A stretch of DNA of 64,000 nt from Dimorphilus gyrociliatus (GCA_904063045.1 CAJFCJ010000001.1:2728001-2792000), one strand, 5' to 3'. Positions 40,301-46,403 are shown, counted from the first letter of the stretch. Notes: generated by a model from the sequence alone, not told the origin. Made by a program: numbers and translations.

Positions 40301-40374
40301 CAGGCGATTATTCTTCGCAACAGTTTTACCAACAGCAGTGGGCAAATTACTATAGTGGTAATTGGCAACAATAG
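37354..40374 (+). CDS. PRPF39: Pre-mRNA processing factor 39 (U1 snRNP-associated HAT-repeat protein)
   Basis: Exons 37354-37387, 37664-38079, 38266-38391 and 38707-40374. Motifs [60 protein letters not shown] and [22 protein letters not shown]. Confidence 0.96.
40168..40215 (+). repeat. Coding (GGT)n(GCT)n repeat giving G6-A10 in the PRPF39 tail
   Basis: GGG, five GGT, nine GCT, then GCA, all in frame. Confidence 0.9.
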
Positions 40375-42010
40375 TTTTAGAAGGGTTCAAAATTACAAAA
40401 CGATTTTTGTTGTATTGAAGGAAAAACATTTGCGACTTTTGATAAAAAAAGATGAATAAAAGACTTGAAATAGTGTAAAGTATATTCATAACATTCTCGT
40501 CGTTTGATTTTTTTTTTTTTTTTGCATTTCTTTTCTATTGAAAAAAAACATATCTTTTACAAAATTGCCAAACTTGTCTTATTTTCTATTTTGGTTATAC
40601 CTACAAACATTGTAAGCCATACACTGTTTATGTATTTATAAAATAAGACTAGATGCGTGCTTAGATCTTGCTTTCATTTATACGCTATTATGAGCTGGTA
40701 AAGATGCGACGGAAATGATCTAGAAAAAGCTATCTACTGTAATAACTATATCTAGACTTTCACCGCACCTTACGTGCAAAGGAATAGTTGCACGATTTAT
40801 CTGCAGAAATAAATGTAGGTCATCTATTAAACATAATAATTTATTTGATAGCAGAAGAATAAAAAATACCTATATTCCTTTCAACTAAGTTAATCTCAAC
40901 AATATAAAGCACTAATTGATGAGAAGCTAATCTGGGGAAAAAACTGCATTATGCATACACAAGAGCAATACAACAGCACGAAAACAAAAGCGCATACCAA
41001 CCTTTTACGATAGATTATATAGAACTAAAAGAAAGGTTAATTCAAGAAGAAAGAGATGTCATTGCCAATACACAATCAGTTGAGGATTATCTTTAACATG
41101 TATACTACTTTTTACTGCTTTCCAATGAAAAGTTCCCTACTCTTTTCCCTTGATTTTCCGCAACCCCTTTCATGTCTATTTCTTTTAAACCCGTTAGATA
41201 AAAGAAATAACTAGTTAATTAATTAAAAAAGTTAATAAACCTTTCCTTTCTTTCTATTGTAGCAAACAATCAGCAAACAGTATACAACGTAAAAGATAAT
41301 TTCAGATCATGAGGATATACATGCATACAGTTTATCCTGTATATATGCATCCATATATACCATTACATTATGAGTAGCCCTATACAATTCTTAAGCAAAT
41401 GTTTCTTATGATAAAACTCCACGCAAGAAATCGACACCGGAAATAAAGAACAAGATATATATTTTAGTATATATGTCCTTATACATATCAAGTCACTTTT
41501 ATATAAATAATAAATTGATTAAAAAAGAAATTGTAGATAAAAAAATAGGCACAACTGAATAAAAAACAAAAATATGAGATATCAAAGAAGGAAAGAGGAG
41601 AAAGTCAATAGAGAAATCAAAATATAAAGGGAAATACAGTAGTAATGTTAGAAGAGGAAGAAGAGATTTCACTCATTTCATCTTCTCTAAATATTCAAAC
41701 TTTTAACAAATCCGATTGAACTTTCAAAGTATTTATTAATTATTAAAATAATTAGTATTTCTTTTTTTTTAAAAAGAAAGAGAAAAAAATAAATAAAATC
41801 CCTAGAATGTTCTATTTCTTTTTGTACTACATAATAATCTTATTATTTCAACTCATTCATTTTTATCTTTTCTCTCCCTTTTTAGGTAATAATTAAGAAA
41901 TCTAGTTCATTTTTTATGTCCTAAAAAATTAAGCTAAAGGCAAACGATTGCTTCTTTTTTTCTCTTTTTAAAAAAGAAATAGAAGAATTAAAAGAAAAAG
42001 AGAATTAGAC

Positions 42011-42011
42011 G

Positions 42012-42043
<32 letters not shown>

Positions 42044-42097
42044 GAAGAAGAAGAAGTAGAAGAAGTAGTAGAAGAAGAATTAGAAGTAGAAGAAGAA
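42011..42097. repeat. (GAA)n degenerate trinucleotide repeat just 3' of the AChBP-like gene
   Basis: Long gaa/gta run. Confidence 0.9.
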
Positions 42098-42119
42098 AAA
42101 ATTGAAAGAATACACTTAA

Positions 42120-44018
42120 TTACCTAAATAAGAAACTGCAAAATACTAAAAGCAAACAGGAGACTGAATAAGTAAATTCAGATGAACTATTGTCGTCCTT
42201 ATTATTAATAATAATATTCTTTGAAATCTTCATATTGACCGTTTTCGCTCCTATATTTCTATCATCTTCGTTCTTTACAATTGAAACGTGAGCAACCTCG
42301 AATTTTTGCGAGGCTCCAAACATTTTAATATTGACTTTTGTTTCTCCTAGACCGTATACCATGTAACGGAAGAAGCAGCTAATCGATTCGCCAGATGGCG
42401 TATTATTCCTACAAGGTAAAGTTGTTCGAAAGCCTTCTTCCATCATAAAAGTTCCAGTACTATATACTTGAACGACATCCGATTTATGAATAGATTCATA
42501 GTTTTCGTTAGGATTGAATAGATAAATACTCGGTGTCCATATATCTGTTTTCCTCATAGATGCATTCTCAATAGTCTTACTATCATTACTAGGGGCCCAT
42601 TTTCTTGTTGAATCGTTCCAAGACTGCCAAATATTTTTACATTAAACAAACATAACATTTAAGTTCTTTTTACTATCTCCCTTTGGTTATATTTTAAATA
42701 TACCAATAGATAATTAATTATATAGGTTAGTATATTACTTAGTAATGTTTTGTATATATGCATATGTATATTAATGTACTTTTTTAAACTTCATACATTG
42801 ATCGCCAGGGGGCGTTCTGGTGAAAGAATTTCTATATAACTTTTTATATAAATAAGTAATAGATAAAGGATGGAGAAAACTTTTTAGTTTGAAGAAAAAA
42901 AAAGAAAACTTACAATTTCTTGCCAAACAAGAAGAGAAAGTTTGCTAAAATCTTCTGTAAACTTCCAATTTCCTTCGTCGAGTTTTAAAACAATTTCACC
43001 GATAACGTTTACGTTAGGCGCCAGTTTGTTTAAGTAGCCTCGCTCAAAAACTTCCGTAAACGAACGCAAATCCATGCGAGAAAGCCTGAAGGGTTGAAAA
43101 GTTTTCTATAATTAAAGCCTATCATTCCAGAGGGGGAGAGGGAGAGAGCAAGATACGAATCGGTTCTTTTCACTTTTTCTCAGTTGGGCCTACTCGATCA
43201 AATTTTATGGCAAAGTAGGAAAATACTATCTATATGTTTTTTTAAGAGCATTTATCGGGTGATTAATTGTCGAGAAGGCGTGGCCAAAAGTATTCATTTT
43301 TATGTTAGTCGCTGATATATGTATACATATATATGCTCATTAATGTGTCGTTTATCGTCTAAACAAGTATTTAATCATCATATTAGAGTGTTATATACTG
43401 TAAAAAGGTCGATTTATTTTAAAGTTACTCTCAAAGTGAAAGTAGAAAAACATAGCTATTTAAACTACTTGATTGATTTTACAGAAGAACATTTTCTACG
43501 ATAAAACCAAACAGAAAATTACTATAATAATATATAGATAAAAATATGTATATATCTTGATTACATCTAAAAACAAACCCGTATAAATTAACCTATATTC
43601 TCTCTTTACGATTCCCATCTCATCTCTTCTTCCTTCTCTCTCTTTCTCTCTCTCTTTCTCTTTTTTTTGTTTTCTCGTATTCTTTTACTCCTAATCTTCT
43701 ACGTCTAATTTTTTTTATTGCCTTCATGCTTAACGCCTACTTAAACGCTTTAGGAAAAATGAAATAATATAAAGAAAATTTTCCGAATTCTTGTATCCTT
43801 TTGGCTAAATATCAACATATTTAGAATAGAAACAACTATTTCTCGGTTAATGAACGAAAAACGGGTTAAAAAGGTGGAAATTTTTTTTAATAACCTTATT
43901 AAACCATATAACTAATTAAATGTAATTTATTACTTTATTAACTTAATTGTAATGAGACTTACTTAACGCCAAAGACAGTGAATAGGAAGAAAATGGTAGC
44001 TAATCTCGTACAGATCAT
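42120..44018 (-). CDS. Stand-alone Cys-loop receptor ligand-binding-domain protein (AChBP-like, 243 aa) with signal peptide and hydrophobic C-terminal tail
   Basis: Exons 44018-43963 (MICTRLATIFFLFTVFGV), 43085-42914 and 42623-42120; phases 2 and 0 match. LLVWQEI|SWNDSTRKW and IWTPSIYLFN correspond to the WxxxxWxD and IWxPDIxLYN LBD motifs, followed by C-x11-C. No TM1-4. Confidence 0.8.
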
Positions 44019-45287
44019 TCTTCACCCTTGAAATAATCCAGTCTCTACTGATAGCTTGAGTGGATGTTGAATAAATGCGCACCATACGGCCCCGCCAAAC
44101 TAGAGAAAATGCCGGCAAAAGTCACTATATATTTTTTTCTCGTTTTGTTTGTAGAGTTTGTGGAATTAGGTGTATACAAACTCGATCGGCTACTTTGCCC
44201 GAAAGTGATTTACGATCGCTATCGGCTAACTAGTACATGCTGTATAAATTAACTCGTTACTTGTACCGGCTTAAGATTAAGCCTATTTTGTAAACAGTAA
44301 ATGCTTTTTTACCTTTTTTCTTATAACTATCCAAACGCCTAGTTCGTTCGCTCACTCACTCTATCTTTCTCTTGAGCGCCTGCTCCCCCCCCCCTTCTCC
44401 CTTGTTCTCCTTCTATCATCTATCAGACCATTCTATACTTCCCTTCTCTTTACCTTTCTCCTCAATCAGTTGGCTGCTTTCCTTCATCTGCATCATTTCA
44501 CCAGTCAAACTTTTCCTTCCACCCCTAGTTTTTTTTTCTCTTTCACTTTCTTTTCTTTAGCTCGCCTCCCCCCGCTTCCACCCCCCTCCCCCGACTCTCC
44601 CCTCACCCCGTCTAAATATATCCTAATCTCAGGTCATTCTCAAAGTAGTACGGACGTTTTCTAAAAAAAGATGCTTCATAGAAATAACAGATATGATATA
44701 TGCCTATGTTATTGCATATCAGTTAGATATGAATTACCCTCTCATAGGCCTGGGTATTTTTCCTGTATAGATTTACTTGACTCCATCAAATAATTTGAGT
44801 CGGTAGAAAACACCCGAGAGAATTTAAATTTATAGGCATAACAAAAAAAAATAGTCTGCTAGTTACGCCATTTGCTTATTTTATTTATTCTTTAACGGTC
44901 TATTTCTTTGATCTAAGTATAACTTATCCCATTGATATTACACATGGCGCTGAATGTTTTTATAGTTGCATTTTATTTTTTAAACGTAGCAAATATTCCA
45001 TTAAAAATAAACAACGTAGTATATAAAAGTTATTTTTTTTAAATAATTTAATTAAATTTTATAATCCACGTGTTTCTTATCAGAGAATTAAAAAAAAAGA
45101 AAAGAAAAAGATGAAAATAAACTACCTAAATCGCGCAAACCTAACCTTTCAAACTTAGTTCTCAGGCTGTTTTCCGATAGAATTCGAAAACTTTCACCTT
45201 TCGAAATTTTACCGCCAAATATTTTTCAACGTCAGCTTGTAAATATTCTTTTTATTCTCTTTCCGCTTCCGGTTAAAGCAGAAAAAT

Positions 45288-46403
45288 ATGACGAATGCAA
45301 AAAAAGTCACAGATTTTGATGCATTTCTATCAAATTATGATACTACAACATTAGCAATTGCTGCAACATTTATTTTAGGAATTATAACAGGTTATTCATT
45401 TTATAAGTTTCTATTGTGTTTATATTTTCCACCAAACGACATATGTTTTCATGAGCGATGTTAAATAATTGTTCGCAACTTGACAGTGTTAATATTCTTC
45501 ATAAAAAGATCCACTGGTTCTGGAAATAGTATTTTATTTATGGGAATTAATAATGCTGGAAAAACAGCAATTTTCTTAAATGTAAGTTAAAAATATTTAT
45601 CTAATACTAAAGAAAATTTTCATTTTATATATTTACAAATATAAATTTCTATTGTAGCTCATAAAGTCAGAGAATCGTCTTACTATAACATCGATGAAGC
45701 AGAATGAAGGAACTGTTCAAGTAGGAGGAAAAGTAATTATTTTAAACAAAGAAAAAACACTTTTATTACCTGATAAATTCATTAATTATTTTCTTTTTTA
45801 TTCTTGCGTAGAGCTTGAAAATAATTGATCTGCCAGGAAATGAAAGAATAAGAAAACAATATATGGACCAATTTAAAAAGAGCGTTAAAGCCGTTTTTTT
45901 TGTTGTTGATAGTTTTACATTGCCAAAAGAAGTTAAAGATGTTGCTGAGTAATGAAACCTATTAAATTAGGATTAAACTCTAATACTAATCTATTTAACA
46001 GGCTTTTGTATGATATTCTTATCGATGGAACGTTAACAAAATATTCTCCAACAATAGTAATTGTATGTAACAAGCAAGACCATGCTATGGCTAAAAGTTC
46101 TTCAGTTATTAAGAATCTTCTTCAAAAAGAACTGTAAAGTTTTTCTTTTTTGTGTTTAGTAATTGTAATGTATAAATAATCAATTTAAACAATTATCTTA
46201 GCAACACCCTACGTACAACGAGAGCTGCTGCCTTAGATTCGATTGATCAAAATGAAAAGGTAAACCTTCTTGGAAAGAAGAACAAGGATTTTGAATTTTC
46301 GGATTTGAAGTTTAAAGTTGAATTTATTGAAAGCACAATAAAAGATAACGATGGTAAAAGCGGTTTAAGCTCCGTTACTGATTGGTTAGAAAAGGTCGCA
46401 TGA
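45288..46403 (+). CDS. SRPRB: Signal recognition particle receptor subunit beta
   Basis: Six short exons. N-terminal TM segment, P-loop GINNAGKT, IIDLPGNERIR, VFFVVDS, NKQD and ELNTLRTTR. Confidence 0.92.

Follow-up and report, generated by a model that had tools for sequence, protein, structure and literature searches.

A gene on the minus strand of the Dimorphilus gyrociliatus genome, at positions 42120–44018 of the stretch analysed here, encodes the extracellular LBD of a nicotinic-type channel and ends before any channel part, and we regard both the reality of this gene and the channel-less nature of its LBD product as near certain. Positions are counted from the first letter of the window, by which we mean the whole 64,000-nt stretch of DNA that was analysed (GCA_904063045.1 CAJFCJ010000001.1:2728001-2792000). 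D. gyrociliatus is a miniature annelid with a genome of about 73.8 Mb (PMC7854359). We propose that the gene descends from one for a nicotinic-type pentameric ligand-gated channel (pLGIC), of which it has kept only the extracellular LBD. Its product has four parts: a signal-type N-terminus comes first, then an LBD that is complete though very divergent, then a polar linker of variable sequence, and finally a hydrophobic C-terminus, which is short. The protein would enter the secretory pathway with cleavage of its signal peptide, and the hydrophobic C-terminus may then be exchanged for a GPI anchor or, less likely, stay in place as a minimal membrane anchor; either way the LBD would be displayed at the cell surface as a tethered binding protein. 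There it may act as a decoy, a chemosensor, a toxin binder or a modulator of channels, the roles suggested in the original prediction. Taken as a whole chain, a surface-tethered binding module with a non-classical pocket seems to us probable by a small measure. The more specific proposal, a natural GPI-tethered nicotinic-family LBD that would serve as a pore-free surface binding or sensing module for a non-cholinergic ligand and would be expressed from an ultra-conserved promoter and 5'UTR, is put forward tentatively, as something possible but doubtful.

The gene consists of three exons, both introns are GT..AG, and the translated product has 243 residues. Exon 1 (43963–44018, minus strand, 56 nt) holds the ATG, MICTRLATIFFLFTVFGV and 2 further nt, ends in phase 2 and encodes a hydrophobic, signal-type N-terminus; by inspection, its charged n-region (MICTR) and hydrophobic core of 13 residues form a candidate ER signal. 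Two codons ahead of the ATG there is an in-frame TGA, which leaves the frame no possible start further upstream. Exon 2 (42914–43085, minus strand, 172 nt) supplies the LBD with its N-terminal helix and strands β1-β2 and ends with LLVWQEI in phase 0. Exon 3 (42120–42623, minus strand, 504 nt) runs from SWNDSTRKW… to …CSFLFR and encodes the rest of the LBD, the linker and the hydrophobic tail, followed by the stop codon at 42120–42122.

Logan contigs from three runs, one from the same species (X3) and two from a relative (X1/X2), were compared with positions 41400–44400. The X3 contig (924 nt, 100% identical) covers 42108–42623, 42914–43084 and 43962–44113 and extends 85 nt past 42108 within a GAA repeat, while the X1/X2 contig (990 nt) contains the same three pieces and is about 92% identical in exon 3. 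In both species the RNA joints, 42623|42914 and 43084-5|43962-3, coincide exactly with the splice sites of the three-exon structure that had been proposed from the DNA alone, and since spliced RNA is the only possible source of such exon-exon contigs, the gene is transcribed and spliced. The contigs of both species run unspliced through the stop codon at 42120–42122. The 5' reaches of the RNA contigs are 44113, 44207 and 44319. On the other side, the 3'UTR extends at least over 42023–42119 (minus strand), judged by the X3 contig, which runs into the GAA-rich simple repeat; this long GAA/GAAGTA repeat (41984–42107) lies directly past the stop codon and opens the 3'UTR.

Public annotation covers the locus with two imperfect models of an unnamed protein. 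DgyrCDS723 (P0001, 221 aa) joins exons 2 and 3 from an internal Met and lacks the signal sequence. DgyrCDS724 (P0002, 222 aa) includes exon 1 and introduces an extra 63-nt GT..AG mini-intron inside exon 3 (42455–42530), removing 21 residues of a SIYLFNPNENYESIHKSDVVQ-type segment. This mini-intron was not found in the RNA contigs, which may drop rare isoforms. The RNA contigs thus favour the three-exon model over both annotated ones. In the searches and structure predictions, single exons and the database models P0001 and P0002 represented the protein.

The product is a complete, very divergent LBD of nicotinic descent. The original prediction of a Neur_chan_LBD domain was borne out by the PF02931 profile (gathering cut-off 26 bits), which scored 35.4 bits against exon 3 alone (residues 1-106) and 40.8 bits against P0001, the match spanning profile positions 44-163 only. 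All sequence matches in the PDB were to AChBPs or nAChRs, the best being Biomphalaria AChBP2 (PDB ID: 4AOE, E 4e-6) and the next the Torpedo γ subunit. An AlphaFold model whose input alignment included paralogues (mean pLDDT 64, core 70-86, C-terminal third of low confidence) shows the β-sandwich LBD fold with an N-terminal helix, exon 2 contributing helix and strands. Foldseek matched the model to AChBP and nAChR ectodomains with a probability of 1.00, and VIA-align superposed it on the nAChR α1 ectodomain (PDB ID: 2QC1) with a Z score of 14.3 and 3.3 Å rmsd over 187 residues. The domain may oligomerise; a homodimer prediction (residues 20-203, two copies) scored 0.00, which gives no verdict and is evidence neither way.

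That the LBD is followed by a stop codon without TM1-4 was likewise confirmed. A whole-genome search with the channel membrane domain profile PF02932 gave 162 matches, and neither PF02932 nor M1-M4 exons were found in the window at E≤1. The transcript passes the stop, no joint leaving exon 3 was seen in the RNA contigs of X1, X2 or X3, so that onward splicing to TM exons finds no trace there, and the neighbouring gene downstream is PRPF39, which is convergent with the LBD gene and ends at 40374, beyond a 1.7-kb AT-rich spacer. Two other loci, L027 and L028, were considered as further TM-less genes and rejected, as both carry divergent TM exons.

The canonical signature disulfide loop is C-x13-C with an FPFD-type motif. 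In the window protein the Cys loop (42375–42413, minus strand; CRNNTPSGESISC) is C-x11-C without FPFD, with its two Cys at the aligned positions. The spacing had been noted correctly in the original prediction; it does not set the protein apart from AChBPs, as was claimed there, because Biomphalaria AChBP2 has C-x12-C and the AChBP-type genes of D. gyrociliatus itself have C-x9-10-C. A short polar Cys loop is expected where there is no M2-M3 loop to couple to, and in sequence this one resembles those of channel-less relatives. With neither M1-M4 nor an FPFD Cys loop, the gene product cannot itself be a channel.

The orthosteric site is remodelled. There is no CC anywhere in the ectodomain, in agreement with the predicted absence of the vicinal loop-C cysteines; the only ectodomain cysteines are the two of the Cys loop, and any others that the mature protein has are in its tail. 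Aligned with paralogues, the protein has the Tyr of MVY (RYMVYG) opposite the loop-B Trp, as was proposed, retains the loop-D Trp (LLVW), and carries Phe (IYLFN) for the loop-A Tyr and Ser for the Asp of W-x-P-D. The loss of the vicinal loop-C cysteines together with the loop-B Tyr suggests that any ligand is probably something other than classically bound acetylcholine. All five predicted N-x-S/T sequons are present in the product, and an ortholog described below keeps two or three.

The nicotinic-type family is large in the D. gyrociliatus genome, with 170 LBD exon matches. A phase-0 acceptor lies exactly one codon ahead of the W-x-D Trp (WQEI|SWND), a position that the original prediction had matched to nicotinic receptor genes; compared with paralogues of the same genome, it occurs in at least 16 of about 25 paralogous pLGIC genes. 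Because both position and phase are identical in these paralogues, the shared intron is good evidence for common descent from the local nicotinic-type family. The gene itself is single copy and very divergent: a search of own-genome proteins returned nothing besides the gene itself at E<0.4, and a phmmer search of 1.84 billion representatives returned only itself and P0004 (E 5e-4). P0004 is a 230-residue LBD-only protein from an environmental transcript, whose own relatives are two similar environmental proteins; it was rejected as a close relative, being no nearer to the LBD gene than to the ordinary channels of the D. gyrociliatus genome. Orthology to any AChBP was not demonstrated, all similarities being about 15-30 bits.

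Starting from a Logan protein (P0003), we reached genomic contigs (L034-L038) from a related worm. One of these, L034, carries a syntenic ortholog adjoining a convergent PRP39; this ortholog is identical to the window gene in the lengths of its exons (56/172/504 nt), in where its donors and acceptors lie, and in its stop. The sequence of exon 1 is conserved in this ortholog, including the candidate N-terminal signal.

How the protein is held, if it is held, depends on its C-terminal extension (42123–42197, minus strand; DDNSSSEFTYSVSCLLLVFCSFLFR), in which 13-17 uncharged hydrophobics come after a polar linker containing small residues; it is a candidate GPI signal or minimal anchor. By hydropathy, the last 17 residues form the only strongly hydrophobic stretch apart from the N-terminus. 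A GPI signal has small residues at ω and ω+2, a spacer of 5-10 residues and a hydrophobic end, with no cytoplasmic domain. By inspection, the tail of the window protein fits this rule with N-S-S or S-S-S, EFTYS and then VSCLLLVFCSFLFR, and that of the ortholog fits it with N-A-S, QFTYSF and then GCLLLAFCSFFFR; both have small residues at ω, ω+1 and ω+2, a spacer of 5-6 residues, 13-14 hydrophobics and no cytoplasmic domain. For a GPI signal, 13-17 hydrophobic residues are near the lower limit of length, and the tail is a plausible candidate for one.

Two readings of the tail compete, according to where the LBD ends. We considered that the protein may be soluble, secreted and AChBP-like, in which case the tail would be a greasy β10 ending in the conserved pre-M1 Arg, and the 34 residues before it a long loop C. 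MAFFT does pair …LLLVFCSFLFR with …DLTFYIRVKRK of the paralogues, the AlphaFold model forms strands in the tail (205-208 and 212-220), and the C-terminal Arg is as in canonical LBDs. However, the model rests on that same MAFFT alignment and is not independent of it, the tail has a pLDDT of 53-62 and residues 173-200 are disordered; a second AlphaFold run, made without paralogue rows for the C-terminus, reached a mean pLDDT of 49 and left residues 158-221 unresolved. The supposed loop also holds a conserved, strand-like segment, TVNMKISKNII, which HMMs of own-genome LBD C-termini (with or without M1) place on β10, with KFEVAHVSIV on β9 and the tail unaligned, at scores of 5-6 bits. TVNMKISKNII is identical in both species, and the linker that follows (NNKDDNSSSE, against QNNNNNNASQ in the ortholog) is the most variable part of the protein. 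From the β9 landmark FEV to the stop there are 60 residues in the window protein versus 35 in the AChBP-type paralogues (+25), and the spacing after β9 allows a normal loop C and β10 before the tail; BLASTP of the C-terminal half against these paralogues gave no alignment. Further, 11 consecutive hydrophobics and two conserved, partnerless Cys are atypical for an exposed β-strand, and the two tail cysteines would stay unpaired if the tail remained in a soluble protein. An LBD complete before the tail is thus favoured, with fair but not overwhelming weight, over a tail that is itself β10, and we consider a soluble product rather unlikely; if the tail were only β10, the gene would be one more divergent AChBP-like protein.

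Given an LBD that is complete before the tail, the hydrophobic segment could also be retained to span the membrane as a minimal anchor, perhaps what is left of M1, in a type I single-pass protein whose tail is not exchanged for GPI. The tail occupies the place where M1 would start, it presents 17 uncharged residues and then a terminal Arg, and its best local alignment with an M1 profile sets the first tail Cys on the conserved Cys of the M1 'PC'. That alignment scores only 0.8 bits for the window protein and 2.6 bits for the ortholog against an own-genome M1 profile, however, and is matched by 191-348 of 1000 shuffled tails for the former and by 22-33 of 1000 for the latter; a remnant of M1 was rejected on this ground, as not significant against shuffles. 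Moreover, 17 residues, T, Y and S among them, and a cytoplasmic end of a single residue are short for a stable TM helix, and we hold a retained transmembrane anchor to be improbable. Exchange of the tail for a GPI anchor would remain our preferred account of how the LBD is tethered.

Counted per exon, the window gene and its ortholog differ by a dN of 0.125 and a dS of about 0.94, and the resulting dN/dS of about 0.13 points to purifying selection and to a gene that is not a pseudogene. The most conserved part of the protein is the block GTFMMEEGFRTTLPC(R/K)NNTPSGESISCFFRYMVYGL, which surrounds the Cys loop and has one change in 38 residues between the orthologs. The extreme divergence of the gene, with its single match besides itself among 1.84 billion representatives (E 5e-4), and the loss of the classical binding residues would suit a decaying truncated channel gene, transcribed yet functionless, but such decay is very improbable given the dN/dS of 0.13, the frame, exon lengths and stop kept at a dS of about 0.94 in a second species, splicing and expression in two species and the single change in the 38-residue Cys-loop block. 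By these measures we take the locus to be a functional, lineage-restricted gene under purifying selection.

The 5' end of the gene lies in an ultra-conserved block of about 350 nt (44000–44349; L034 ~190-545) that is 96-100% identical to the ortholog contig, whereas the introns are about 55% identical. The block is single copy and takes in the start codon and 5'UTR, a TATA-like box and some 215 nt of DNA further upstream; the 5'UTR and promoter region (44019–44349, minus strand) is inside it, with TATATAG some 20-25 nt ahead of the point where the X3 contig begins at its 5' end. Synonymous sites in the adjacent CDS are near saturation at the dS given above, against 96-100% identity in the block, and the RNA contig of the relative likewise has 3 differences in 244 positions of the block versus 43 in 510 of exon 3. 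Rfam gave nothing credible in the 5' block or the introns, and folding of the 5' block showed no excess stability. An upstream ATG at 44091 on the minus strand, in weak context and near the likely cap site, opens a 40-codon frame (44091–43963) that overlaps the main ATG out of frame and terminates in the final three bases of exon 1; lying inside the ultra-conserved block, it also occurs in the ortholog. Within intron 1, an island of about 170 nt (43380–43560; L034 1390-1560) is about 80-90% identical, above the rest of the intron, and has no Rfam match. The next gene upstream is transcribed divergently (45288–45590, plus strand) and begins with a hydrophobic segment and then a GxxxxGKT-type P-loop (…GINNAGKTAIF…), a sequence reminiscent of the SRP receptor β subunit.

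Proteins that consist of an LBD without a channel are already known, and what is unusual here is the tail and also the altered pocket. AChBPs are the main structural surrogates for nicotinic receptors, and to our knowledge these channel-less copies of the nicotinic LBD are known only as soluble scavengers. They are the closest known kind of protein to ours, which lacks two of their defining features, namely an end at β10 and the aromatic/CC site. The AChBPs of molluscs and of Capitella teleta (PDB IDs: 4AOE, 1UV6, 2BR7 and 4AFG) share with the window protein a signal peptide (putative in our case), a stand-alone LBD without a channel, the fold, and a short, hydrophilic Cys loop without FPFD. 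They are soluble and end at β10, whereas the window protein has about 25 further residues of linker and hydrophobic tail; and they keep the vicinal loop-C Cys pair and the loop-B Trp, both of which the window protein lacks.

The same genome (G000) has AChBP-type genes of its own, L055-L058 (C58:15936-16178, C117:13447-13653, C93:19176-19382 and C66:102957-103163, with a copy of C66 carried by C194). Their contigs are small, and haplotype copies may be among them. Like the window gene they are channel-less and have short Cys loops (C-x9-10-C). In contrast to it, they stop right after β10 (…INLKRRT, …IQLRRKV and …IILSKR, each followed by the stop codon), with no extra tail, and they keep a YxCC loop C and the loop-B Trp as GSW or ASW. 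None of the four was returned at E<0.4 when the protein of the window gene was searched, and judged by sequence the window gene is distinct from them.

Full-length nicotinic-type pLGIC subunits, including the orphan annelid Alpo receptors (PMC10338036), share with the window gene the LBD fold, the W-x-D…W-x-P motifs and the intron before W-x-D. The Alpo4-like subunits have, like the window gene, lost the CC tip of loop C (PMC10338036). The window gene differs in having neither M1-M4 nor an FPFD Cys loop. Cephalopod chemotactile receptors (PDB IDs: 8EIS and 8EIZ) were among the structure matches, no closer than ordinary nAChRs; they show that an LBD of the nicotinic type can be adapted to different ligands. 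The GPI-anchored Ly6/Lynx modulators of nicotinic receptors offer a functional analogy only, as small tethered surface proteins in cholinergic contexts: their three-finger fold is unrelated, and they bind receptors rather than mimic them. No GPI-linked AChBP-type protein was reported in the literature library covered by full-text searches, where Ly6/Lynx were the only GPI-linked proteins to appear alongside AChBP.

If the proposed reading is true, a membrane-tethered, remodelled copy under purifying selection would mean that the fold had been taken up for a different role on the cell surface, be it as a tethered decoy, as a sensor or as a partner of real channels. A GPI-tethered LBD would then be a use of the Cys-loop fold so far undescribed, and the gene would add a case in which truncation converts a channel into a binding protein. 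Since it shares a genome with classical soluble AChBP-type genes, the two kinds of channel-less LBD can be compared directly.
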